The position numbers and the translations under genes are program-made. Positions 6,748 through 58,318 of a DNA stretch of 64,000 nucleotides are shown here, piece after piece. Each line of letters opens with the position of its first letter. Positions within the stretch are counted from its first letter, which is position 1. Location of the stretch: sequence record ON529860.1; one strand, 5' to 3'. The notes under the pieces were generated by a model. It ran no database searches, was not told where the DNA came from, and worked only from the letters and a program-made list of their open reading frames with translations.

Positions 6748-7371
6748 TCAGCCCAGTTGAATCGTGCCGTCGTCGGCGGTGTAGAGATAGACTTCTTCGG
6801 GGTATTTTTGCGCGGCTTCCGTCAGGGCCTCGCCCTCCGCTTCGGGCCAGTCGCCGTCTTCCCAGAACCCGACGCCGTTACGGGTCCGGGTCATGTAGAA
6901 GTCATATCCGGCCTGCTCTTGCACCGAACAATTGACCGCGCGGACCTCGCCCGACGCATAGGCCGCTTCCAAGGTGGCGGCGTTCTCGCGTTGGAAGCGT
7001 TCGCAGTCCGCGACCATTTCGCGCAAGCCGTCCGGGTGAATCTCTTCCGGGCAAATGGTGTTGTCACGGTCCGAATCGGCGGCGGGGTGTCCGGTCGGAT
7101 ACTCGGCGCCGTTCGAGGCGGCGGCGCCGATGTAGCCCCGCGTGAACGGATCGCACGGCGTCAGGACGGCCCAGGCATCGGCTTCATAGGCGGCGCGCGC
7201 CTTGGCGTTGGCCTCTTCGAGGGCGTCCACAACCGCGCGGGCTTCCGCGACCAGAGCGGCGGGTTCGGTGTGCGGAAATTGCATCACCGTCAGGGCGGCG
7301 ATCTGTTGCGCCGTCAGGGGGCTGTAGTCGGGGACCGTGGTTTCGGCGGTCAGCTTGGCGAGGGTCGTCAT
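6748..7371 (-). CDS. conserved phage hypothetical protein (AGYDFYMTRxRNGVGFW motif)
   Basis: Resembles the common phage motif GHDFWLTRNGHGAGFWD; promoter at 7416. Confidence 0.75.
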   Translation of the reverse strand: MTTLAKLTAETTVPDYSPLTAQQIAALTVMQFPHTEPAALVAEARAVVDALEEANAKARAAYEADAWAVLTPCDPFTRGYIGAAASNGAEYPTGHPAADSDRDNTICPEEIHPDGLREMVADCERFQRENAATLEAAYASGEVRAVNCSVQEQAGYDFYMTRTRNGVGFWEDGDWPEAEGEALTEAAQKYPEEVYLYTADDGTIQLG

Positions 7372-7738
7372 GGGGTTGCTCCCGTTGATGTGCGGGCATA
7401 TTGCACGCCAAGGTCTTAACAACAAGTTAACGCCGCGTAGATTTTTCAGGGCGGGCGGTCGTTAAGGTTAATGCGAAAGACTCGCACAGGGCGGCGTTAA
7501 CCTTAACGGAATCGTCCGAAAAATTAACCATGCCCGTTGACGCTTTCTTAACGACTCGGCGCTAGGCTCAAGGGTTCCATAGCCACGCCTCGCGCCGGGT
7601 CCGACCCCCCGCGCGCGGTGTCACGCGCTCGCCTCATCCGGGGCGGGGCGCCCGGCCACGCGCCCCGACATCAGGAGGCGCGAGCCCGCCCGGCTGGGCG
7701 GTCGATCGGTCATGCCGGCGACCGCCAGGGCGGGGGTG

Positions 7739-7918
7739 CGTCGAATCGAAACGGCGTCAGGTCAAGTCGGCCGGCGTCGAAACGAAACGGCGTCAGGTCA
7801 AGTGCGTGCGCGTCGAATCGAAATGGCGTCAAGTCAAGTTCGCTTGCGTCAAATCGAAATGGCGTCAGGTCAAGTGCGCTTGCATCAAATCGAAACGGCG
7901 TCAGGTCAAGTGCGCGGG
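7739..7918. repeat. 5 x 36-bp tandem repeat (CGTCRAATCGAAAYGGCGTCARGTCAAGT...)
   Basis: Units start at 7739,7775,7811,7847,7883; no spacers. Confidence 0.95.
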
Positions 7919-8007
7919 CGTCAAGTTCGCCTGGGCGGGACGCGCCGACGCCCGGCGGGCGAATGCCGACCGGGCGTCTTTTGATCAGGCGGGAGCCCGA
8001 TGAATTC

Positions 8008-8214
8008 GAGTCACGGAACCTAAAAACAGAGTCCGATGAGCACGAGGGCGAAAACCATCTTCGACGCGCTACAGAGTTTATCGAGCATATTCAGGGGCTT
8101 CCTTCTACTACGGAGTCACGTCTGGTGGAAAACGTGACAGGGAACCGCCGGAGTCATCGTTGGGGGCTAAACTGACTCCGAATTGGAGTCACGTCTGGTG
8201 GAAAACGTGACTCC
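8008..8214. repeat. GAGTCACG motif cluster with GAGTCAC-N14-GTGACTC palindromes
   Basis: Copies at 8008,8113,8151,8186; perfect 10-bp inverted repeat at 8185-8214; 27-bp direct repeat at 8112/8185. Confidence 0.9.
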
Positions 8215-8226
8215 GGGGTTTCGGTT

Positions 8227-9210
8227 TCAGGCCTCGGCTTGGAGGACGACCGTGGCGGCGGTCGTGCGGCTGGCGAACTGCTCGCTCGCGATGTCCCCCT
8301 TCAGACCCTCAAAAGCCATGATGCTCGCCCGCAGGTCCGGGGCGATGTAGTCGGTCCCCTCAGCGGTCGCGTCCGCCTGAAACAGGTCCAGCAGGCGCGC
8401 CCGCACCCCGGCGGCGTCGTCCGCATAGAGGATCGGCGCACCCTCTTGCTCGGGCTCGATCCGATACGGGCGGCGCTCCAGCCTAAGGTCGAAGGGTCCG
8501 CTCCACGTCTTGACTTCGGGCGGCGCCAGAGCGGCGTCGATCAGGGAGTCGCAGAGGTCCTTCGACAGGTCAGCGCAGGCGTCGGCCTCATTCTGCGAGA
8601 CGTAGAAGGTGTGACGGGCCTCATCGACCGCCAAGGCGTGATCGGCCACCCAGGCCTGGCCTTGGAAGGTCGCGCGGTAGGGCAGGGTCTCGGGCGCCGG
8701 CTGGGCGGGCGCCGGGGGATCGCGGTCCAGCCAGTAGCGGTAGAGGGCAGCCCACGCCCGCGCGCGCTGACGGTCGCCCGTCGTGGGCAGGTAGGCGTCG
8801 TGCAGGGCCTCGGCGGCGGCGGTGCGATCCGGCGTGTCCGGATCGGCCTGATCCGCATCAAAGGCGTCGAAGGTCAGCAGGACGGCCTGCGTATGGCGGG
8901 CGGTCCACTCACCGGCAGGACCTGCCGCCAGAACCTCGCGCACCTCGGGGAGCGTCAGGTGGGAAAACCGGGCAGGGTCCCCGGCGATAAATTCCGAAGG
9001 GTCCCCGACCTGCGATTCGGCAGGGTCCCCGGTGATGAATTGCGCAGGGTCCCCGGCGATGGATTCGGCAGGGTCCCCCCGCTCGATTCCGTCCGCGATG
9101 ACGTAGAGCCGGCCGATCAGGCCTTGGGCGGCCTCCGGCGTGGGGTTGTGGCGCAGCGCCAGCACTTGGGCGGCGGCGGCGCGGATCAGGGCGGGATAGG
9201 TGGTGCTCAT
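8227..9210 (-). CDS. hypothetical protein, 327 aa, with 5 x 8-aa GDPxxxxx repeat
   Basis: AGGAG RBS, promoter at 9263; repeat encoded by 24-bp GGGTCCC units at 8975-9077. Confidence 0.75.
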   Translation of the reverse strand: MSTTYPALIRAAAAQVLALRHNPTPEAAQGLIGRLYVIADGIERGDPAESIAGDPAQFITGDPAESQVGDPSEFIAGDPARFSHLTLPEVREVLAAGPAGEWTARHTQAVLLTFDAFDADQADPDTPDRTAAAEALHDAYLPTTGDRQRARAWAALYRYWLDRDPPAPAQPAPETLPYRATFQGQAWVADHALAVDEARHTFYVSQNEADACADLSKDLCDSLIDAALAPPEVKTWSGPFDLRLERRPYRIEPEQEGAPILYADDAAGVRARLLDLFQADATAEGTDYIAPDLRASIMAFEGLKGDIASEQFASRTTAATVVLQAEA

Positions 9211-9396
9211 AGGGGCTCCTCTTGGAGGGAGATGGTCAGAGGTCCTGTCTAGCGGCCAATCGTTAACATCCGGTTAACAGGCCGCATTCGGGGCCGGCGC
9301 CGGCGTTCACCCGGCGTTAAGGTTAACGGCGGCCGGGCGACCCGAAAGCGCCCGCCGGGGGAGACAACCCGGCGGGCGCGGACCTGACGGTGGGCG

Positions 9397-9876
9397 TCAG
9401 GCGGTCGGGGACAGTTCGTCCTCGAAGGCGTCGTATTCGGCCCCGTCGTCGGTGCGGACCTGATACATGGGGCCGACCTCCGCGTCGGCTTCGTCCTCGG
9501 TCAGGGCGCGCACGACCTCGGCGGGCGTATCGGGCGGCGTCGTCGCGTCCGAACAGGTCGAGGTGAACAGGACGCGGGCGCCGGGCTCGAACGCAGGGGC
9601 CTGGGGTTCGGCGGCGTCGTCGTCGTTCGACGCCTGGAACTCCGCCGACGACCCGTCGATCGAGGTGCCGGGCCAGGACGCGCCGGGATCGGCCAGCATC
9701 GTCAGACAGCCGCTGATGTCGGGCTGGGCGCGGGTGCCGATATAATCGCGATAGGCGTCCGGTTCGCCGACCGGGGTTCCGGGGTTCTCGGCGTGGAAGC
9801 GTTGCAGGGCCGCGTCGAACAGTTGGCGGGGGTCGGTCACGTCGAGGGTGATGGTGATCTGGTAGGCGTCGCGCAT
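9397..9876 (-). CDS. hypothetical protein, 159 aa
   Basis: RBS, promoter at 9926. Confidence 0.8.
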   Translation of the reverse strand: MRDAYQITITLDVTDPRQLFDAALQRFHAENPGTPVGEPDAYRDYIGTRAQPDISGCLTMLADPGASWPGTSIDGSSAEFQASNDDDAAEPQAPAFEPGARVLFTSTCSDATTPPDTPAEVVRALTEDEADAEVGPMYQVRTDDGAEYDAFEDELSPTA

Positions 9877-9945
9877 GGGGCTCTCCCGGCTGGGGTGTCG
9901 ATGATCTGACCCTAGAGGACAGAAGTTAACAGGCGGTTAACGCGC

Positions 9946-10719
9946 TCAGGTATTGAGCGCGGGGACCGGGGCGAGGAGGCCGAACAGCGTGTTATAGTCG
10001 TCGCCCTCGGGTGCCTTCTCGGCCGCGTTCATCTTGGCGTCATAGTCCTGCATCGCCTCAGCGGTGCGGTCGTAGGCGTCCGCCTTGGCCTTGAGCGCGG
10101 CGAGGGCGGTGTTCCCCGTCGAGGCGAGCAGGGCGGCGCGGGCGGCGTCGGGCAGGGCGTCCCACGCCTGTTCATCCAGACCAAAGGCCCGCATGGCGCG
10201 GCTGGCGTCGTCGCGCTCGGCCTCGTCCAGTTCATCCACGCGGGCCTTCAACAGGTCGCGCTGTTCGGCGTCGGCCAGATTGGCGAGGATGAAGCGCAGG
10301 TCCTCATCCGAAATCCCGTTGCCGCGCAGGTAGGCGACGACGCGATCCCAGGCGGCGACCTCGGCCACCGCGTCGCGCGGTTGCAGGTCGAACAGGCGGG
10401 CGGCGTGGTTGTCGCTGGCCTCGGACAGCATGGCGATCAGGTCTTCCGCCGTGACGTCATTCAGCAGGGCGGTGGGGCGGGGCAGGGTCCGACCGTCCGT
10501 CACCTGGGTATCCCAGTTGATGGTCGGCGTTATCGTCAGTTCCGACATGGCGGTCCAGCCGTCTTGCAGGTCGGAGTCGCCTCTGAGGGCGGCCACGGCC
10601 TGTTGAACCGCCTCCTGCGGGGTCTCCGCTGTGACGGCGACCGTCTTGTGGGCGAAGAGGGTGGCGTAGGCCGTGACCAGATAGTTGGTCTGGACCGAAG
10701 ATCGGACGGGGCTGGACAT
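9946..10719 (-). CDS. hypothetical protein, 257 aa
   Basis: AGGAG RBS, promoter at 10764. Confidence 0.8.
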   Translation of the reverse strand: MSSPVRSSVQTNYLVTAYATLFAHKTVAVTAETPQEAVQQAVAALRGDSDLQDGWTAMSELTITPTINWDTQVTDGRTLPRPTALLNDVTAEDLIAMLSEASDNHAARLFDLQPRDAVAEVAAWDRVVAYLRGNGISDEDLRFILANLADAEQRDLLKARVDELDEAERDDASRAMRAFGLDEQAWDALPDAARAALLASTGNTALAALKAKADAYDRTAEAMQDYDAKMNAAEKAPEGDDYNTLFGLLAPVPALNT

Positions 10720-10864
10720 GGTGTCTCCTGTCGTTGCGTTGAGGCTGTTCTAGCGCCAATCTCTTAACAAAAAGTTAACGCCGGTCAACTCTTTTCGACG
10801 GCCCAGGTCCGTTAACCTTAATGCGCGTTGCTCGCAAAACGCCCGGCCGAAGCCGGGCGCTGCG

Positions 10865-11611
10865 TCACTTGACCGGGGGCAGGTTGCGCAGATCGACGGT
10901 CGGCGGGGCGCCGTCCTTGGCGACCTTGGCGGCTTGGAGGATCGACTCCATCAGGGTCTTGGTCGCCGTGCCGGCGCGCAGACGGGCCGCCGCATCGGTC
11001 GATTCGACGTCATCAGGGATGATGGTCGGCGCCGCCTTCAACGCCTCCAGACAGGCCTTCATCGCGGCTTTCGCGCCGAGGGTGGCTTGCGCCGCCGCCG
11101 TGCGAAGGGCGGCGGCGTAATCGCCCTGCTCTTCGTCCGCCATCTGCAAGAGACGGTCCTGCTCCTTCAGCAACCGCGCCGCCTCATGGGCGGTGATGGC
11201 GATGGCGTTGGGCAGGGCTTGGGCCTCCTTGGCGTAGAGGGTCAGCAGCCGGGCCGCCTCCTCGGCGTCTTCGGCATAGACGGCGCCGGCGTCCGACCAG
11301 TTGTTGACCAGCACCGCCATGGCGGCCTCGGCGGCATAGTGAGGCAGGGAGGAGCCGCTGCCGATGTCTTCCAGCTTCTGGCACAGGCGCAGGGTCAGGG
11401 GGTCGGTGTTCTGGGCCAGGGCGAGGGTCAGGAACTCAGGCTGGACCTGAAACTCCGTGACGCAACCGGCGTCGTCGTCCGCCGACAGGCCTTCGGCGTC
11501 CCTGTAGTTCTGAATGGCGAACTCCAGCGAGCGTCGCACATGGGCGGGGTCCACCGCGCCGCCTTCGATCTGCAAGCTGACGATGTAGTTGATGTTGACG
11601 GGTGCGGTCAT
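10865..11611 (-). CDS. hypothetical protein, 248 aa
   Basis: AGGAG RBS, promoter at 11657. Confidence 0.8.
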   Translation of the reverse strand: MTAPVNINYIVSLQIEGGAVDPAHVRRSLEFAIQNYRDAEGLSADDDAGCVTEFQVQPEFLTLALAQNTDPLTLRLCQKLEDIGSGSSLPHYAAEAAMAVLVNNWSDAGAVYAEDAEEAARLLTLYAKEAQALPNAIAITAHEAARLLKEQDRLLQMADEEQGDYAAALRTAAAQATLGAKAAMKACLEALKAAPTIIPDDVESTDAAARLRAGTATKTLMESILQAAKVAKDGAPPTVDLRNLPPVK

Positions 11612-11749
11612 CGGTGTCTCCTGATGTGGCGTTGATCCTGTCCTAGCACCGATTCGTTAACAACAAGTTAACGCCACACTGCGAAACGCTCGCGTTAACC
11701 TTAACGGCCGGCGCCCCGAAAACGCCCCGGCCGAAGCCGGGGCGCAGGA

Positions 11750-12070
11750 TCAGCAGACGGTGTTCGCGCCGACCGTTTCGGAGACGTGGGTGGGCTCCTC
11801 GTCTTCTTCGTCTTCATCGTCCGCCTCGGAAGGCTCCATGTCAGGATAGGTCGCGACCATTTCGCTGGCCCATTCGTCCACGGCGCCCACGGCGGCGGCC
11901 AGGTTGCCTTGCTCCCAGTTGTCCCGAACGGCGGTCGCCAGCAACACGCCCTCGGCGGCGTCCTGATAGAGGCTCAGCAGCAGGGCCGTGGACAGGGTGA
12001 CGGTCTTTTCGCCCGCCGCCATGGCGGCGTCGAGGACGGAGTCGATGGTCGGTTCAGCGGCGTCGGTCAT
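11750..12070 (-). CDS. hypothetical acidic protein, 106 aa
   Basis: RBS, promoter at 12115. Confidence 0.8.
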   Translation of the reverse strand: MTDAAEPTIDSVLDAAMAAGEKTVTLSTALLLSLYQDAAEGVLLATAVRDNWEQGNLAAAVGAVDEWASEMVATYPDMEPSEADDEDEEDEEPTHVSETVGANTVC

Positions 12071-24917: not shown

Positions 24918-25167
24918 TCACAGGGGCGTCGGTCGCAAGGCCGGCGCCCTTCGTTGTTGCGACCCGCTCGCGTTAACCTTAACAGAGCGTTAACCTTAAT
25001 GCCCCTGCCCGCTCTAGGGGTATGACCGGGTATGACCAGGTCATACCGGGGCGGATTCCCGCTGAAAATCACCCGAATTTGCCGAATTGCGCTCGAAATC
25101 GCCGGATTTTGACCCTAAATCACTGTTTTTACTAGATTTTTCGGGTTTTCTGGCGGTCCAGAGGCCG

Positions 25168-25320
25168 TTAACCTTAACGGGGCGTTAACCTTAACGCGGT
25201 TTTGGTTAACGGGGCATTAACCTTAACGCCTGGATGGTTAACGAGGCGTTAACCTTAACGCGGTGATGGTTAACGGGCCGTTTACCTTGACGGCGGGAGG
25301 GTTAACGGCCCCAGGGTTAA
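25168..25320. repeat. dense TTAA half-site array, 32-bp period (TTAA-N7-TTAA-N2-TTAA-N11)
   Basis: N7 pairs start at 25174,25206,25238,25270. Confidence 0.9.
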
Positions 25321-25329
25321 TCGGGGCGG

Positions 25330-25533
25330 CGTCAAATCGCGCTCCCGTCAAATTCGGCCGGCGTCAAATCGAAACGGCGTCAAGTCAAATCTGTCGCGTT
25401 GAAGCGCGCTCGCGTCAAATCGGCCGATCGTCAAATCGCGCTCGCGTCAAATCCAGATCGCGTCAAATTCGCGGGGCGTCAAATCGCGCTCCCGTCAAAT
25501 CGATCGCGCGTCAAATCGGCGAGGCGTCAAGTC
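25330..25533. repeat. 16-bp-period CGTCAAAT array (about 13 units)
   Basis: GTCAA(A/G)T at 25331,25347,25363,25379 then 25414,25430,25446,25462,25478,25494,25510,25526; includes one copy of the 36-bp unit from 7.7 kb. Confidence 0.95.
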
Positions 25534-25766
25534 GACCGGGCGGCCTGAAGCGGGCCGGCGTCCAGTCGGGCTGCCAGGGCGCGCCCGAGCGGGCTTGCGC
25601 GGCGCTCCGCCTCCCAGGGAGGACACCTGGAAGAAACGGCCTGAAGCGCGCCCTGGCGCCTCTTTCTAACCTGAGCCGGGGCAGGGTCAAGCCGAACAGG
25701 GTCGAGAAGGCCGTTTTCCGGGCCGTGGAGCGCCCTGGCGCGGGCGGGGCGACCGCAGGGCCGCTG

Positions 25767-26216
25767 GAGTCACGAAACCCATCCACGGGCCGGAAAACCA
25801 GCCAGGACGGGCGATTGTCAGTCACGATACCCACCATCTGTGACTCTGCCGGGATTTTTGTCAGTCACGAAACCCGGAGGCGGGCTTCGCCGGCGATCCT
25901 GGCGCCCAGGCGGATCAGTGTCAGCGGTTGTGTCAATGCGGGACACAATAAGGCGGGATTAGGGCGAAATGGGATTTCAGGGCGGAGTCACGTTTGCCGA
26001 AACGGGCGCTCGGGACTTCTGTTGATTTCATTGAGGTTTTTCGCCGGAGCCGGGCGTTTTGGAGTCACGATTGCCGTTGTGCGGTGCAGCAATGCGCCGG
26101 ATTTGAGCGGGTCCAGGCGGGGCGAAACAGAGTCACGTTTTCCTAAGCTGTTGGGTTCATTACGCTTTTTAGGGTGGGCCAGCACCTGAGTCACGTTTGA
26201 CACGAACGATGACTCC
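25767..26216. repeat. GAGTCACGWWWNCC motif cluster
   Basis: Copies near 25767,25820,25863,25985,26062,26130,26188; two form N14 palindromes. Confidence 0.85.
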
Positions 26217-26295
26217 GTCAGCCGAGGCGCAAAAACAGGCAAAATCACAGTAAAATCAGTGATTTAGGGGCGTTTTTCGGGATTTAGGGGTGAAA

Positions 26296-26478
26296 TTAGC
26301 GGCGATTCCGGTGAAATCGGTCGATGGCGGTGTCGTGAGGGGCTTGCCGCCCGTCAAAACGCCCTGCACGCTCCCGATGACGCCGTTTGCGCTCCCAGGG
26401 ACCGGGCCAGATGATCTGGACGGTCCAGACCAGCAGCAGGAGGAACACAAAGGCCCCCATGACGATCGCTACCCACAT
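26296..26478 (-). CDS. small membrane protein, 60 aa
   Basis: GGAGAG RBS; N-terminal TM helix, basic tail. Confidence 0.55.
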   Translation of the reverse strand: MWVAIVMGAFVFLLLLVWTVQIIWPGPWERKRRHRERAGRFDGRQAPHDTAIDRFHRNRR

Positions 26479-26509
26479 CGCGCGCTCTCCGTGACCTGGT
26501 GAATGACCA

Positions 26510-26714
26510 GGGTCCCCGCCGGATGAATCTGGAGGGTCCCCCGACCGAAAATTCGCCAGGGTCCCTGGACGAAAAATTCCAAAGGGTCCCCGGCCGTTAA
26601 TTCAGCAGGGTCCCCCGGTCGAAAAATCCCGAGGGGTCCCCGCGTTGAATTCGCCAGGGTCCCTGGGCGATGAATCCAGACGGGTCCCCGGTCCAGAAAA
26701 TCCGGAAGGGTCCC
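26510..26714. repeat. 9 x about 25-bp AATT/AATC...AGGGTCCC array
   Basis: GGGTCCC at 26510,26534,26559,26584,26608,26634,26657,26682,26708. Confidence 0.95.
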
Positions 26715-27020
26715 CGCAGGCTATCACGGTCGGGCCGGCGCCGCCATGGGCGCGCGGCGTTAACCTTAATGGCGCGTTAACCATGCCTGTTAAGGTTAAC
26801 GCGGGGCCGGCCGCCGTTAACCCTCTGATCGTTAAGGTTAATGCCGCCGGGTGGCTGGCGCGAGATCGTTGACAGGGGACTCAGTTGGTCTGTCGCACTT
26901 ATGACACAGTCCGAGGGCGCCGTTGTCTGTCAACAAATCGCGTCTGGAATGCGCTTCCAGCGGAGCCCCGATTTTGAACCCTCTCCTATTCTTTCATGGA
27001 TCATATCCCAACATCCAAAG

Positions 27021-27075: not shown

Positions 27076-29799
27076 TCAGCCGAACGAGCCGATCTTGCGG
27101 GAGCCGAAGCGGGTCCGGGACCCCTTCATCCACTGGAGGGCCTGGGTCATGGCGTCCACCTGGTCGTCGTGTGCGCCTTCGGGGAACTGCCCGACTTCCT
27201 TGGTGAAGGCGTCCATCCATTCGGCCTTCTTGGGCAGGAAGACGTCGCCGGCCGTGATCAGCGGACTGACCTCGTCGAAGCGGAATTCCTTGGACTGGCC
27301 CTTGGGGTCGATGCCGACGATGGGGGCCGGCGCCAGGCGGCGGTGACTGGTCGTCTGCCCCCGGTTCTGGATGTAGGCGGTGCCCTGGCCCTTGTCTTCG
27401 ACCAGGATCACATCGACGCCGTCCTTGACCGCCTGCTGTTCGATCATCTCGATCATGGCGTCGAACTCGACCTTCTTGCGGGTCTGGCGCAGCAGGTAAT
27501 ACTGCCGGTCGTTGGTCTCGCCCCAGGTCTGCACGACCGTGTAGTCGGCCCGCTGATTGACCTTGGCGGCGCAGTCGACCGACAGGACGATGCGGCGGAA
27601 GTGGGCGCGCTTGTTCGGGATCGCCTTGCCGTGCTCGTCGACATGGCCCTCGGCGCGCTGCTTCTTCAGCGCCTCCTCGGTCAGGTGCGGGGGCCGCTCG
27701 TAATACTGGAAGCGGCCGGCGATCGAGTCGTCGGAGGTCGCGGTGGCGTTCTGCTGGTAGACCAGGGCGAAACGCTGGTAGGACCATTCGGTCTTCTTCG
27801 TCTTGAAGAAGGACAGATCGTAGTAGTCCCACAGGACGTCGCCCAGCTTGCGCCCGAGCACGTCGGTGTCCTCGTCGATGCACAGCGCCGGCGCCTCGAC
27901 CTGGGTCCACTGGGCGTAGGCCGGCAGGCGCGGGTTCATCTCCATCAGGTGGCCCGTCAGGTCGTGCTCGTGGAAGCGCGTCATGATCAGGAACATCTTG
28001 CCGAAGGGCAGCATCCGCGAACCGATGTCGCCGACGAACCAGGTGTTGACCTTCTCGCGGGCGGCGGCGGATTCCGCCTCCTCGATCTTGGCGTAGGGGT
28101 CATCGACGCAGGCGAAGTTGGCGCGGAAACCGTGGACGGCCTGCCCGGTGCCCTTGGCGACATACTGTCCGCCGTAGCCGGCGATGGCCCACTGGTCGGC
28201 GGCGCGGGTGGCGTAGTCGACCACCACCTCGGGGAAGACCCGACGGAACTCCTGACCGCCGACCAGGGAGCGAATCTTCTTGGAGAACTCGTTCTCGACG
28301 AAGCGCTGGCTGTGGCCGCCGCCGATGATCTTCAGCTTGGGATTGCGGCCCAGACGCCAGGCGACGAACAGGCGCGAGGCGTAGGTCGAGTTGTGCACCA
28401 CGACGCCGTCGGCGGTGAAGGTGTGGTCGCCGAACACGGTCAGGCAGCGGCACTCGCCGGAGCCGGCCGCCTCGACCATCAGCACCTTGTCCGTCACCTT
28501 CGAGCCGTAGGGCAGACGCTTGGCGACGAAGTCCGGTTCGTGGCGGCCGTGGAAGCTGATGCCGGAATCGAGCAGGCGTTCGATCGCCGGACCCTTGACG
28601 ATGAGCGCGGCGCGACGGTTCGGCTGCGGGTGATCGACCACGGCGTCGACGTCGTAGCGCGCCAGCAGCTTTTGCAGGTCCTGGGCGAAGCCGACCGACT
28701 TGATCCAAGCGATCAACGTGGCCTGGCTATACTTCTTCGGCGTCTCGCCGCGCAGGCGGAAGTAGGTCGTCAGGAAGTGCTTGATCTTCTCGTCGTCGCC
28801 CCGGAACACGAACTCGGGCACGCGGCGTTCGCCGGCGCGCTTGGTCATACCGAGTAGTTCCTGGTAGGGCCGGGTCGTCTTCGAGCGCAGACGGATCAGG
28901 TGGCGCTTGTTCGCCGGGACCCAGCGGCGGGCGTAGCGGATGCCCAGAGCGTCCAGCACGCCTTCAGCCTCCTCGACATGGGCCAGGGAGGAGAACCACA
29001 TCTGGAGGTTCTGGTAGGGCGTGCCGTTCGGGGCCGTCGCGTCGGTGAAGGAGCCGAAGGCGGCGACGAAGGCCGCCAGCGCGAAGACATCCTTGGTATG
29101 ACCGGAGGTGTCCTCGGGTTTTTCCGGGGTATGGCTGGTCATACCGACCACGCTCAGGTTCATGCGCGGGCGCAGGTTCTGGGCTTCGATCCAGTCGCCG
29201 TCGACCAGGAAGGGATGGTCCGGGGCCGACAGGATCGTGCGACCCTTTTCGGTCGTGATCTTCAGCAGCGGCAGTTCGCCCTGGACGTGAACCGCCTCGA
29301 CCTTGCGGCGGCGGCCGGCGTGGGTGACGACCTCCTCGCCGACTTCGATGTCGCCCAGGGCCTTGTAGGCGCCCGACCCCATCAGGACCGGGGTGGAGAC
29401 GTGCAGCGGCTTGGCGTGGCCGGGCGGGCAGTTCAGGATGAAGCGATCCAGTTCGGGATCGTTCTCGATCTTCTGGAGCAGTTCGGTCAGGTAGATGTGC
29501 CACTTCGATTCCGGCGGCTCATCGGGCGAGACGTATTCGCAGAAGGCGTTGAAGTCGTCGCGGGCCAGCGGCAGCAGCCGCTCCAGGTGACGCTTTTGCA
29601 GTTCGTCGCTCAGCCCCATCAGGGCGTCGATCTGCTGGTTGGTCTCGTGCACCCCGGTGATCTTGATGATCCCCTGGCGGGTGTTGTCGGGCAGGATCAG
29701 GCCGCGTTCCGCCGAACGCTTGGCTTCGGCCGCGAGGCTCTGGAGTTGGTTGACGGCCTGGCGCGCTTTGATGCGGTCGGCGATGATGTAGTCGGACAT
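27076..29799 (-). CDS. terL: terminase large subunit with intein (907-aa precursor)
   Basis: Walker A NCPPGHAK|STY split by intein, Walker B-like CVDDP, nuclease motifs SVDCA and HDDQVDAMTQAL. Confidence 0.93.
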   Translation of the reverse strand: MSDYIIADRIKARQAVNQLQSLAAEAKRSAERGLILPDNTRQGIIKITGVHETNQQIDALMGLSDELQKRHLERLLPLARDDFNAFCEYVSPDEPPESKWHIYLTELLQKIENDPELDRFILNCPPGHAKPLHVSTPVLMGSGAYKALGDIEVGEEVVTHAGRRRKVEAVHVQGELPLLKITTEKGRTILSAPDHPFLVDGDWIEAQNLRPRMNLSVVGMTSHTPEKPEDTSGHTKDVFALAAFVAAFGSFTDATAPNGTPYQNLQMWFSSLAHVEEAEGVLDALGIRYARRWVPANKRHLIRLRSKTTRPYQELLGMTKRAGERRVPEFVFRGDDEKIKHFLTTYFRLRGETPKKYSQATLIAWIKSVGFAQDLQKLLARYDVDAVVDHPQPNRRAALIVKGPAIERLLDSGISFHGRHEPDFVAKRLPYGSKVTDKVLMVEAAGSGECRCLTVFGDHTFTADGVVVHNSTYASRLFVAWRLGRNPKLKIIGGGHSQRFVENEFSKKIRSLVGGQEFRRVFPEVVVDYATRAADQWAIAGYGGQYVAKGTGQAVHGFRANFACVDDPYAKIEEAESAAAREKVNTWFVGDIGSRMLPFGKMFLIMTRFHEHDLTGHLMEMNPRLPAYAQWTQVEAPALCIDEDTDVLGRKLGDVLWDYYDLSFFKTKKTEWSYQRFALVYQQNATATSDDSIAGRFQYYERPPHLTEEALKKQRAEGHVDEHGKAIPNKRAHFRRIVLSVDCAAKVNQRADYTVVQTWGETNDRQYYLLRQTRKKVEFDAMIEMIEQQAVKDGVDVILVEDKGQGTAYIQNRGQTTSHRRLAPAPIVGIDPKGQSKEFRFDEVSPLITAGDVFLPKKAEWMDAFTKEVGQFPEGAHDDQVDAMTQALQWMKGSRTRFGSRKIGSFG
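28390..29409 (-). mobile_element. intein (340 aa), Pro1 class-3-like, degenerate LAGLIDADG domain
   Basis: Starts PLHVSTPV; block B DHPF..W; block F CRCLTV; ends VVHN followed by Ser; in-frame in Walker A. Confidence 0.88.
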
Positions 29800-29803
29800 G
29801 CTG

Positions 29804-30040
29804 TCAGTGGGTCTCGTGAGTGTCGAGCGCAACGGCCGCCAGCAGGTCGTCGACATGGTAGATGAGGTCCGCATCGCCGAGATGGCGCGTCAGGTGACGA
29901 ATGGTGCGGAGGGTGTTTTCAAGCCGCAGGATGCGGCGGCGAAGGCGCGAGGCGCGGAGCATCAGCCCCGCCACCCCGATCAGGTAGACCGCGCTCATCG
30001 TGAGCATGGCCCACAGGAAGATCGGCGGCAGTTCAGGCAT
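29804..30040 (-). CDS. small membrane protein, 78 aa
   Basis: N-terminal TM segment; coupled to terS stop. Confidence 0.7.
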   Translation of the reverse strand: MPELPPIFLWAMLTMSAVYLIGVAGLMLRASRLRRRILRLENTLRTIRHLTRHLGDADLIYHVDDLLAAVALDTHETH

Positions 30041-30729
30041 CAGGAGAAGTCCGGCTCATCGAAGGCTTCGAGCGGCTCCAGGGCGTCCAGCTTGCCCATC
30101 ACGTCGGCGGCGCGCGCGTCGTCCATCAGGGCGACGTCGGTCTCCGATCCGGTCGTCAGCTTGCGATCCTTGGGATCGATCCGCTCCTTCTTGACGTGGC
30201 CCTGGATCAACTCCATCGCCGTGTCGTGACCGAACTCACGGCTCAGTTCCGCCTCGGACTTCTCCGACTGCGGCAGGGCGCCGATGGCGTCGCCCAGAAC
30301 CGCATCCAGTTTGTCCAGGTCGAAGGATTGCGGCACGCTCGACCCGGTGTCGTCGCCCTGACCGCCCGAGAACATGCCCAGGTCCTTGCCGATCAGTTCC
30401 AGGGCCGCGTTGGATTCCTTGAACTGCCCGTCGGCGGCGGCGTTCTGCGCGTTCTCGGCCAGCTTCTGGATGACGAAGGCGCGGCTGACGCCGGTCATCT
30501 GTCCGACGACCTTGGCGGCCTCGACGGCGGCGAGCCGCTGGGCCTCGCGCTGGGCCTTCTGGTCCTCGTAAAGTTCTTCGATCCGGGCGATGACGTCCGG
30601 GTCGGTCTCCAGGTGCTGGGTGGAGGAGCCCGGCGCGTAACCGGCCGCCATGGCGGCCTTGGCGGCGTTCATTCCCTTGGCGCGGTGGCGCGCGTAGAGT
30701 TCGTTGCGTTCGTTGGCGAGTCTTGCCAC
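30040..30729 (-). CDS. terS: terminase small subunit
   Basis: N-terminal AAKAAMAAGY...L..DPDV..RIEEL pattern typical of TerS; position upstream of terL. Confidence 0.75.
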   Translation of the reverse strand: MARLANERNELYARHRAKGMNAAKAAMAAGYAPGSSTQHLETDPDVIARIEELYEDQKAQREAQRLAAVEAAKVVGQMTGVSRAFVIQKLAENAQNAAADGQFKESNAALELIGKDLGMFSGGQGDDTGSSVPQSFDLDKLDAVLGDAIGALPQSEKSEAELSREFGHDTAMELIQGHVKKERIDPKDRKLTTGSETDVALMDDARAADVMGKLDALEPLEAFDEPDFS

Positions 30730-35730: not shown

Positions 35731-35757
35731 TCCCTGCGGTCGCTACTGCGTGAACCT

Positions 35758-36020
35758 GAATCGGTCGTGTCGGTCGAAACGGTCAAGGGTTGGTAGGGCT
35801 GAATCGGTTGTGTCGGTCAAGACGGTCAAGGGTTGGTAGGGCTGGATCGGTCAAGGGTTGGCAGGGCTGGATCGGTCAGGGGTTGGCACGGCTGGATCGG
35901 GCATAAGCGATCAAGGACGGGCATGGCTGGATCGGTCAAGGCCTGGCACTCGAACGTGTTCGAGCCGGCTGGATCGGACATCCTCGTTCAAGGCCTGGCA
36001 CTCGAACGTGGTCGAGCCGG
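35758..36020. repeat. tandem 25-bp units (CGGTCAAGGGTTGGYAGGGCTGGAT) plus 43-bp and about 52-bp duplications
   Basis: Units at 35780,35823,35848,35873; CAAGGCCTGGCACTCGAACGTG twice. Confidence 0.9.
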
Positions 36021-51384: not shown

Positions 51385-51933
51385 TCAGATCATGTCCATT
51401 GCGCGCAGACGCGCGGCGGCGCCGTAGACCCGGACGGTCTCACGGGTGATTCGGGGGTCGCTCAGGCTGCTGGTCACCAGAGGCGCATGGCATTCGTCGG
51501 TCGGCTCGAACACGCCCAGCGACATGGCGCGCCCGGTGTAGATTTGCTGGAAGGACAGCGGGAACGGGTAGGGGTAGTGCCCCTCCGGCCTGTCGCCGGC
51601 GCAGAACATGCGCAGATAGCCGAGGGGCTCGGGGTCGCGCACGTCATCGACGCCGGTCTCCTCGCGCAGTTCTCGCAGCGCGGCGTCCAGCATTCCTTCG
51701 CCGGCCTCGATATGACCGCCCGCCATCTCGATTCCGCGCCGGGTGTTATGCGCCAGGACCACCGCCCAGGTGTCCAGATAGGGGACCATGAAGGCGGTCC
51801 GGGTCAGGTCTTCAGGGGCCTCGTCGTCCGACAGGATCAGATCAACCCGGTTCGGGCGCGGCAGCCAGTCGACGTCAAACTCGGTGCGTGCGATCACGGC
51901 GCCGGGCGGCAAGGTGGTCTTGGGGGTGGGCAT
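51385..51933 (-). CDS. Nudix hydrolase
   Basis: Nudix box GGHIEAGEGMLDAALRELREETGV. Confidence 0.9.
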   Translation of the reverse strand: MPTPKTTLPPGAVIARTEFDVDWLPRPNRVDLILSDDEAPEDLTRTAFMVPYLDTWAVVLAHNTRRGIEMAGGHIEAGEGMLDAALRELREETGVDDVRDPEPLGYLRMFCAGDRPEGHYPYPFPLSFQQIYTGRAMSLGVFEPTDECHAPLVTSSLSDPRITRETVRVYGAAARLRAMDMI

Positions 51934-57961: not shown

Positions 57962-58203
57962 GCGATCTCCTCGAAGTTGATGCGGGCGATGAAGTAGCGC
58001 TGAGGGACCCGATCCCAGGCATCCTTGGTGGTCTTCAGGCGTTCGGTGCGGCGATCGTTCGCGCTCCTCAGAAATGCCTGGGCCTCGGCGAGGTCCATAG
58101 GGACCGAAACGCTCCAGACCTTTCCACTCCTCTCGATACGGACGACGTAAATCTTGTCCTGCTCAACAGGGGCGGGCGAAACAGATACTGATACAGCAGT
58201 CAT
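57958..58203 (-). CDS. hypothetical protein, 81 aa
   Basis: AAGGGA RBS; promoter at 58230. Confidence 0.7.
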   Translation of the reverse strand: MTAVSVSVSPAPVEQDKIYVVRIERSGKVWSVSVPMDLAEAQAFLRSANDRRTERLKTTKDAWDRVPQRYFIARINFEEIA

Positions 58204-58318
58204 GGGGTCCCTTCGGTTGATGCGGTCGGTGTAAAGGAACGATTTGCAGATGTCAATCGGAATATCACACAATGTCAGCCCGAGAGAGTTGACAGACGTC
58301 AATCACCCCGCTAGGAGT

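Follow-up and report, generated by a model that had tools for sequence, protein, structure and literature searches.

Our comparison of related phages supports the conclusion that in ORF 8227-9210 of the giant Brevundimonas phage vB_BpoS-Papperlapapp a nucleotide signal, rather than the protein, dictates the sequence of a tandem repeat, i.e., that the repeat is dual coding. The unit, RGGGACCCT-N4-AATT when read on the minus strand (GGGGACCCT-N4-AATT type), is shared by coding and non-coding arrays, is conserved, is constrained at synonymous positions, is retained independently of the reading frame and interchanges between coding and non-coding locations. It is probably a cis-acting nucleic-acid signal, most likely a protein-binding site in duplex DNA, that was ancestrally located near the terminase large subunit gene, terL, and was overlapped by a reading frame.

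The DNA under study (the window, 64,000 nucleotides) originates from the Papperlapapp genome (ON529860.1, 356,874 bp; 100% identity over window positions 7000-12000), and record coordinates are obtained by adding 62,000 to window coordinates. Papperlapapp is a member of Dolichocephalovirinae, the phiCbK-like giant phages; Kabachok, Domovoi, Marchewka and Bambus are its close relatives, and Gurke and Kikimora are more distant ones.

Three arrays of the unit are present in the genome, all on the same strand. Array A (8959-9078, minus strand) consists of five 24-bp units that are in frame, occupy codons 45-84 of ORF 8227-9210 and encode the peptide repeat GDPxxFxx (GDPAESIA-GDPAQFIT-GDPAESQV-GDPSEFIA-GDPARFSH, minus strand). 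On the plus strand, its GGGTCCC cores lie at positions 8975, 8999, 9023, 9047 and 9071, with a spacing of exactly 24 bp. Array B (26494-26715, minus strand) contains nine non-coding units with GGGTCCC at 26510, 26534, 26559, 26584, 26608, 26634, 26657, 26682 and 26708 on the plus strand, i.e., with successive spacings of 24, 25, 25, 24, 26, 23, 25 and 26 bp. The nine non-coding copies at 23-26 bp and the five in-gene copies at exactly 24 bp that had been listed in the initial annotation were thus confirmed at their coordinates. Array B is located 360 bp past the stop codon of terL (27076-29799, minus strand) and stops ca. 15 bp short of the start codon of the next gene, which encodes a small membrane protein (26296-26478, minus strand, 60 aa). 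Since the spacing of its units varies, no constant reading frame runs through array B, and no gene is annotated over it. Array C lies outside the window (record 58,191-58,253); it is intergenic, contains three units 25 bp apart and is located upstream of a promoter box. Neighbouring arrays are separated by 13-18 kb; array A is 18 kb and array C 31 kb away from the terminase genes.

The plain GGGTCCC heptamer is not enriched in the window (24 occurrences found vs. 18.8 expected); the degree of its clustering, though, greatly exceeds chance. Pairs of copies 14-20 bp apart were found 14 times in the 357-kb genome, on one strand and in three places only; there were no occurrences on the other strand and none in a reversed-pattern control when the whole 357-kb genome was searched. 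Arrays A and B are also recovered by Tandem Repeats Finder.

ORF 8227-9210 (minus strand) is an annotated coding sequence, PAPPERLAPAPP_01330, of 327 amino acids, with orthologues in the seven Brevundimonas phages and among nine metagenome proteins at identities down to 45%. A CtrA-type box, TTAA-N7-TTAAC, located 5′ of its start (9262-9280, minus strand) is its likely promoter element, and the same box is found upstream of neighbouring genes; such boxes have been published for phiCbK relatives (PMC9437464). The protein is laid out as an N-terminal helical hairpin, a low-confidence repeat linker and a helical and beta-rich C-terminal part. In comparison of orthologues, the first 32-44 and the last 240 residues show conservation at the protein level, with varying four-fold sites, and the two parts share one frame across array A in every lineage. 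AlphaFold modelled the flanking domains confidently (mean pLDDT 80), with a pLDDT of about 36 for residues 51-80. Since domains on both sides are conserved as protein, stand in one frame and are modelled with confidence, array A must be translated; judging by the model, the GDP repeat peptide looks like a flexible, disordered linker. A Pfam scan assigned the protein to no family, and a fold search with the model returned no PDB match; the sole viral match in the latter was an uncharacterised homologue from CcrBL9.

Codon usage within the repeat was compared with that in the rest of the same genes, using 65 units from 13 lineages with 4-7 copies of the in-gene array each. The glycine codon was GGG in all 65 units (55/194, or 28%, elsewhere), proline was encoded by CCT in 56 of 64 cases (9/259, or 3%, elsewhere) and glutamate by GAA in 33 of 33 (68/263, or 26%, elsewhere); CAA was used for 16 of 20 glutamines vs. 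54 of 155 elsewhere. Because the units share ancestry through duplication, Fisher p-values for these differences overstate independence and are descriptive only. Still, the 65 units represent 50 different sequences, and the codon pattern holds between groups that differ at half of their residues. Core four-fold sites show 89.5% identity in comparisons between such diverged groups, vs. 60.9% for four-fold sites elsewhere. All conserved peptide residues (G, D, P, E/Q and F) trace to conserved bases of the motif; the repeat, therefore, provides no separate evidence for selection on the peptide.

The spacing of units differs between coding and non-coding arrays: 49 of 52 coding intervals measure 24 bp vs. 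11 of 39 non-coding ones, which range from 21 to 27 bp. Copy number of array A changes in whole 24-bp steps, from four to seven copies. Two metagenome contigs (L014 and L020) each carry one unit in which GGGACCC has moved by one base and is read as GTL or GTP instead of GDP, with the frame restored through 23+25 or 25 bp spacing. At a further locus (contig L018), the homologue P0013 (226 aa) is devoid of the GDP block; the 118-bp non-coding stretch that separates the preceding stop codon from the ribosome-binding site of the gene is instead filled by five units. The proposal made from the sequence at the outset, that the GDP peptide is a by-product of a DNA-level signal, is thus supported by codon choice, by the frame-shifted units and by the array outside the ORF in L018, although these lines favour the nucleotide sequence over the peptide and would suit a signal read in RNA as well as one read in DNA. 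The 24-bp intervals agree with the suggestion that the period is held to a multiple of three within the gene, and the predicted invariance of synonymous core sites was observed for GGG, CCT and GAA codons and in the four-fold identity. The expectation that the block would be variable or absent in homologues was borne out by its 4-7 copies and its absence from P0013; the link to a genome end that this expectation implied was not (see below).

The unit was described from an alignment of 38 coding copies, found in seven phages, and 30 non-coding ones that came from Papperlapapp, phiCbK, Colossus and CcrPW. The information profile is alike in both classes: positions 1-9 (RGGGACCCT) and 14-17 (AATT) are conserved, and the remaining positions are free. 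The two conserved patches are ca. 10.5 bp apart, centre to centre, and the unit period of 24-25 bp corresponds to about 2.3 helical turns, a non-integral number, unlike in many iterons. All arrays are co-oriented with transcription and placed at 5′ ends of genes. Bipartite, co-oriented units in 3-9 copies, repeated every 2.3 turns or so, agree with a protein polymerising along duplex DNA. Chi-like protection sites and G-quadruplexes were considered and set aside, since a fixed bipartite unit with a regular period fits a duplex-binding protein better.

We consider it improbable that the signal instead acts in RNA, with arrays in transcribed leaders and coding sequence binding an RNA-binding regulator or directing RNA processing, e.g., through the GAAUU stretch, which is similar to an RNase E site. 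The shared orientation of every array and its surrounding genes would be accounted for in this way, as would the position of the last unit, which abuts or overlaps the ribosome-binding site in phiCbK, L018, L026 and Papperlapapp. However, there is no conserved hairpin at the level of the unit, array A folds no better than shuffled sequences (z of -0.74), and array B folds about equally well on both strands (z of -3.65 and -3.06), which led us to reject a structured RNA element. A tandem arrangement of 24-25 bp units whose two conserved patches are spaced by 10-11 bp is characteristic of sites in duplex DNA, and the location of array C upstream of a promoter box likewise argues against a function in RNA.

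A site in duplex DNA remains our preferred reading, and its distribution points to an origin next to terL. Three arrays per genome, in identical order and orientation, are found in all seven Brevundimonas phages, with 2-5 units in array C, 4-7 in array A and 6-9 in array B. When array B was used as a blastn query, matches were obtained in 29 Dolichocephalovirinae records; the non-coding array just downstream of terL is present in every phiCbK-type phage examined (29/29 matched records). Its coordinates are 853-980 in phiCbK, 354-494 in Colossus, 418-543 in CcrPW and 1165-1258 in CcrBL9. In relatives with mapped or annotated ends, it lies within the long direct terminal repeat, 0.35-1.2 kb from the left end, the mapped termini being those of Gill et al. 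2012 (PMC3556154). The small membrane-protein gene follows the array directly in Papperlapapp, phiCbK (gp001), CcrBL9 (gp003) and metagenome contig L026. In addition, Colossus (L028:3408-3424) and CcrPW (L029:3237-3253) have a solitary GGGGACCCTTCGAAATT unit located 35 bp after the terL stop codon and followed by an AT-rich stretch. This unit starts ca. 60 bp before the left terminus mapped by coverage in Gill et al. and so stands between the terL stop and the left end; in Colossus-type phages, the motif is, therefore, present on both sides of the packaging cut. phiCbK, Colossus and CcrPW carry the array and have no full homologue of ORF 8227-9210. Since arrays occur without the gene, the product of PAPPERLAPAPP_01330 cannot be a general array binder.

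In Caulobacter phages RBC11, RBC63 and RBC8 (PV231355.1, PV231352.1 and PV231354.1), the array at ca. 865-1040 is annotated as a hypothetical protein, whose predicted translation matches the GDP repeat. The circular record of Kabachok (ON529852.1; record end 356,285) has its opening point within the final unit of array B; rather than a mapped end, this is probably where the assembly broke at the repeat. A scan of IMG/VR with the two-unit pattern retrieved at least 120 loci, mostly unrelated; among IMG/VR sequences, two apparently unrelated viral contigs of ca. 130 kb (L087 and L089) contain 9-20 tandem 50-52 bp repeats with GGGACCCT.

The surroundings of arrays A and B resemble each other as well. 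Regions A (7400-9100) and B (24960-26820), 17.5 kb apart, contain the same four classes of motifs in the same order, namely TTAAC/CtrA-type boxes, a GCGTCAAATCG-type array, GAGTCACG repeats and the GGGTCCCC array. The remainder of region A (7400-8215) is located downstream of ORF 8227-9210 and includes GAGTCACG repeats, a mini membrane ORF, a 36-bp GCGTCRAATCGAAA array and TTAAC boxes, ordered as in region B (24960-26480). The same composite module, in the same order, is present at the left terminal-repeat end of CcrBL9 and in metagenome contig L026. Region A looks like a duplicated copy of a terminal-repeat control module.

Several smaller features were noticed in these regions. GAGTCACG(T/A)TT repeats occupy positions 8008-8215 and 25768-26230, some of them as inverted pairs (e.g., 8186-8215). 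Tandem GCGTC(A/G)AATCG(AAA) arrays with periods of 36 and 16/32 bp are located at 7716-7922 and 25319-25542, and metagenome contigs of relatives end within such arrays. The plus-strand ORF 7618-8175 and the annotated coding sequence PAPPERLAPAPP_01620 (25266-26189, plus strand), which extend over these repeats, are probably not genes. An unannotated minus-strand ORF of 22 codons (8020-8088) would encode the hydrophobic peptide MLDKLCSASKMVFALVLIGLCF; contigs L014, L016 and L018 have a comparable mini-ORF behind the orthologous gene.

Three observations bear on the extent of the terminal repeat in Papperlapapp. First, an element of the form TGTTTCAAAAYGGGACGGYCAGGGACCCAAGGCC...CCGGGGCGCC that contains GGGACCCAAGGCC occurs once per repeat copy in most relatives (in phiCbK, a second core match is found 215 bp further on), at or near the right repeat end. 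In CcrPW, its end coincides with the annotated one; in phiCbK, it lies 44 bp before the mapped end, and it is no more than 0.6 kb from the right repeat end in Colossus and CcrBL9. Papperlapapp has this element once, at record 51,394-51,499 (L150:4395-4500, minus strand), where its neighbours are the genes for peptidase and portal, an arrangement also seen in Colossus. This position is 19.6 kb beyond array A. Second, TTAA-N7-TTAA (CtrA-type) boxes, whose association with the terminal repeat has been published (PMC9437464), stop before the right repeat end in 4/4 mapped relatives. In Papperlapapp, they extend without a gap over record 52.6-88.8 kb, with 66 boxes in 36 kb, located before nearly every small minus-strand gene; the series reaches window position ca. 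26,770 and is unusually long. Third, homologues of genes from the terminal repeats of relatives are found beyond array A. Together, the right-end element, the range of the boxes and the gene homologues lead us to predict, by homology, a terminal repeat of ca. 38 kb, from record ca. 51.4 kb to 89.1 kb or slightly into terL. Such a repeat would hold all three arrays, with array A internal; repeats of relatives measure 10-22 kb.

It is, by contrast, very unlikely that arrays A and B mark both ends of a 17.5-kb direct terminal repeat as terminase signals. The shared motif classes of regions A and B and their distance would suit a repeat of this length, and the right boundary in Colossus lies inside a gene ca. 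16.7 kb from terL (PMC3556154); yet that boundary has no array, the right-end element of Papperlapapp lies 19.6 kb beyond array A, genes homologous to those in relatives' repeats are found beyond array A, and CtrA boxes, which are confined to the repeat in four mapped relatives, run unbroken past this point. We, therefore, rejected array A as a repeat-boundary signal, the predicted right end being at record ca. 51.4 kb and the left one at or in terL, and the connection of the in-gene array with a genome end, suggested in the initial annotation, found no support.

Finally, the view that the peptide repeat itself is selected, as a structural or interaction feature, and that non-coding arrays are its decayed copies or unrelated products of slippage, is scarcely credible: GDP is indeed retained by 63 of the 65 units, and the number of copies varies in whole units only, but codon choice is fixed on rare codons, the DNA motif is retained in GTL and GTP variants, the non-coding array is older, more widespread and present in phages devoid of the gene, the segment is predicted to be disordered, and one homologue has no repeat at all.

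If the units are sites in duplex DNA, as we favour, a single sequence-specific protein would contact the two patches of a unit, one helical turn apart, and would line up or polymerise along the 3-9 co-oriented tandem units, as on plasmid iterons. The ancestral array would be part of a non-coding control module that, in the phiCbK-type phages examined, occupies the terL-proximal end of the long terminal repeat; giant Brevundimonas phages would have gained two extra copies, one of which became overlapped by a reading frame. There, the site would be kept at synonymous positions, the lock on a 24-bp period would keep the frame open, and the GDPxEFxx peptide would be a tolerated, probably disordered linker.

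Here, we infer both that a protein binds the units and what the complex may do. The conserved location of the array, with the terminase operon on one side and the first terminal-repeat gene on the other, near the start of packaging, suggests packaging or repeat processing, replication/partition or control of the adjacent gene. A loading or recognition site for the packaging/terminal-repeat machinery (e.g., the terminase small subunit, TerS) is a possible role and, by a narrow margin, the one we would name first; replication or partition of an episomal form, relatives being reported to persist as episomes (PMC12195562), and an operator controlling the gene directly behind the array follow as equally tentative options, and some other function takes the remainder. 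TerS, encoded at 30040-30729 (minus strand) and recognised by a weak Terminase_2 match, would be one candidate for the array binder; its homologues have the same taxonomic spread as the array, as any core gene would. A Pfam scan of the ORF 8227-9210 product and 16 neighbours returned only two DUF matches in addition to the Terminase_2 one, and no recognisable DNA-binding or partition domain was found in these 17 proteins around and between the arrays. Domain searches also gave no match to ParB_N in the 357-kb genome and no match to the cold-shock domain in the phage genomes searched.

Binding sites located within genes are a known phenomenon, e.g., in lambda O, SPP1 gene 1 and P22 gene 3. The lambda ori iterons are tandem direct repeats of ca. 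19-24 bp inside gene O; they encode a flexible inter-domain linker, are bound by the product of the very gene that contains them and are followed by an AT-rich unwinding region. Array A is similar in that tandem repeats lie in coding sequence, over a linker segment with a pLDDT of ca. 36, and in that a DNA site constrains the sequence of a protein. Unlike in lambda, the units also occur in arrays B and C and in phages without the gene, no AT-rich element is evident, and the ORF 8227-9210 product has no recognisable initiator fold. An arrangement of the lambda O/ori type was thus rejected, since the host gene does not encode a recognisable initiator by Pfam and PDB searches and sites occur without it.

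Packaging sites offer a second comparison. In SPP1, pacL and pacR boxes of pac are located partly inside gene 1, P22 pac lies inside gene 3, and lambda cosB has R sites; each of these phages has one such site per genome, without 6-9 regular tandem units. Array B, with its repeated boxes beside terminase genes and, by homology to relatives with mapped ends, near the packaging cut, resembles these sites, as does the solitary unit across the cut in Colossus-type phages. Here, however, there are three sites over 30 kb, and the units are arranged as 6-9 tandem copies. The pac type, therefore, fits only partly: array B appears to match it by homology, and arrays A and C are distant.

In T7, short repeat arrays SRL and SRR flank the terminal repeat, and T5 has a repeat-rich injection-stop region at the inner end of its terminal repeat; the function of both is poorly defined. 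The likeness lies in non-coding repeat arrays tied to a direct terminal repeat in unit-genome packagers, and, as in T5, a phiCbK-type module would be at the inner end of the repeat copy expected to enter the cell first. The sequences are, however, unrelated, and the T7 and T5 arrays are not reported to be translated.

Plasmid iterons and centromeres (incC and incA of P1, sopC of F, parC of R1 and the dispersed centromeres of N15) are likewise built of tandem repeats. The phage arrays share with them co-oriented units and the presence of several arrays per replicon, and relatives are reported to be episomal (PMC12195562); they differ in being 13-18 kb apart and in that no Rep, ParA or ParB partner was found, with ParB_N sought genome-wide and neighbours scanned by Pfam. 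A partition centromere with an adjacent ParA/ParB operon was rejected, there being no ParB_N in the genome and no partition domain in the scanned neighbours.

The array family itself appears to be undescribed in the literature searched. There is no mention of it in Gill et al. 2012 or Mascolo et al. 2022, no matching motif was seen in the passages of the XRE/TgrL paper retrieved by term search, and a search with the motif string and "Caulobacter" returned only unrelated work. The case is an unusually clean natural example of two codes in one sequence, with related genomes serving as controls in which the same site is non-coding, in frame, shifted by one base or outside the gene. In addition, it brings to light a conserved repeat array of phiCbK, a model phage, and of related phages; the array is located in the terminal-repeat control region, where these genomes are least understood, and finding the binder could explain packaging, entry or maintenance of 200-400 kb genomes. 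More speculatively, the arrays might be a subfamily-wide cis element, so far undescribed, that governs the handling of long terminal repeats, and the ca. 38-kb repeat might have grown by duplication of the whole control module; terminase loading, T5-like pausing of DNA entry or seeding of episome replication/partition could be the handling roles. If so, module duplication would have left one functional array in a gene, where a binding site writes a 40-residue stretch of protein.

A separate tandem array, unrelated to the RGGGACCCT-N4-AATT arrays, is located at 35756-35900 in the window; its unit is CGGTCAAGGGTTGGCAGGG, and its periods are 43 and 25 bp.
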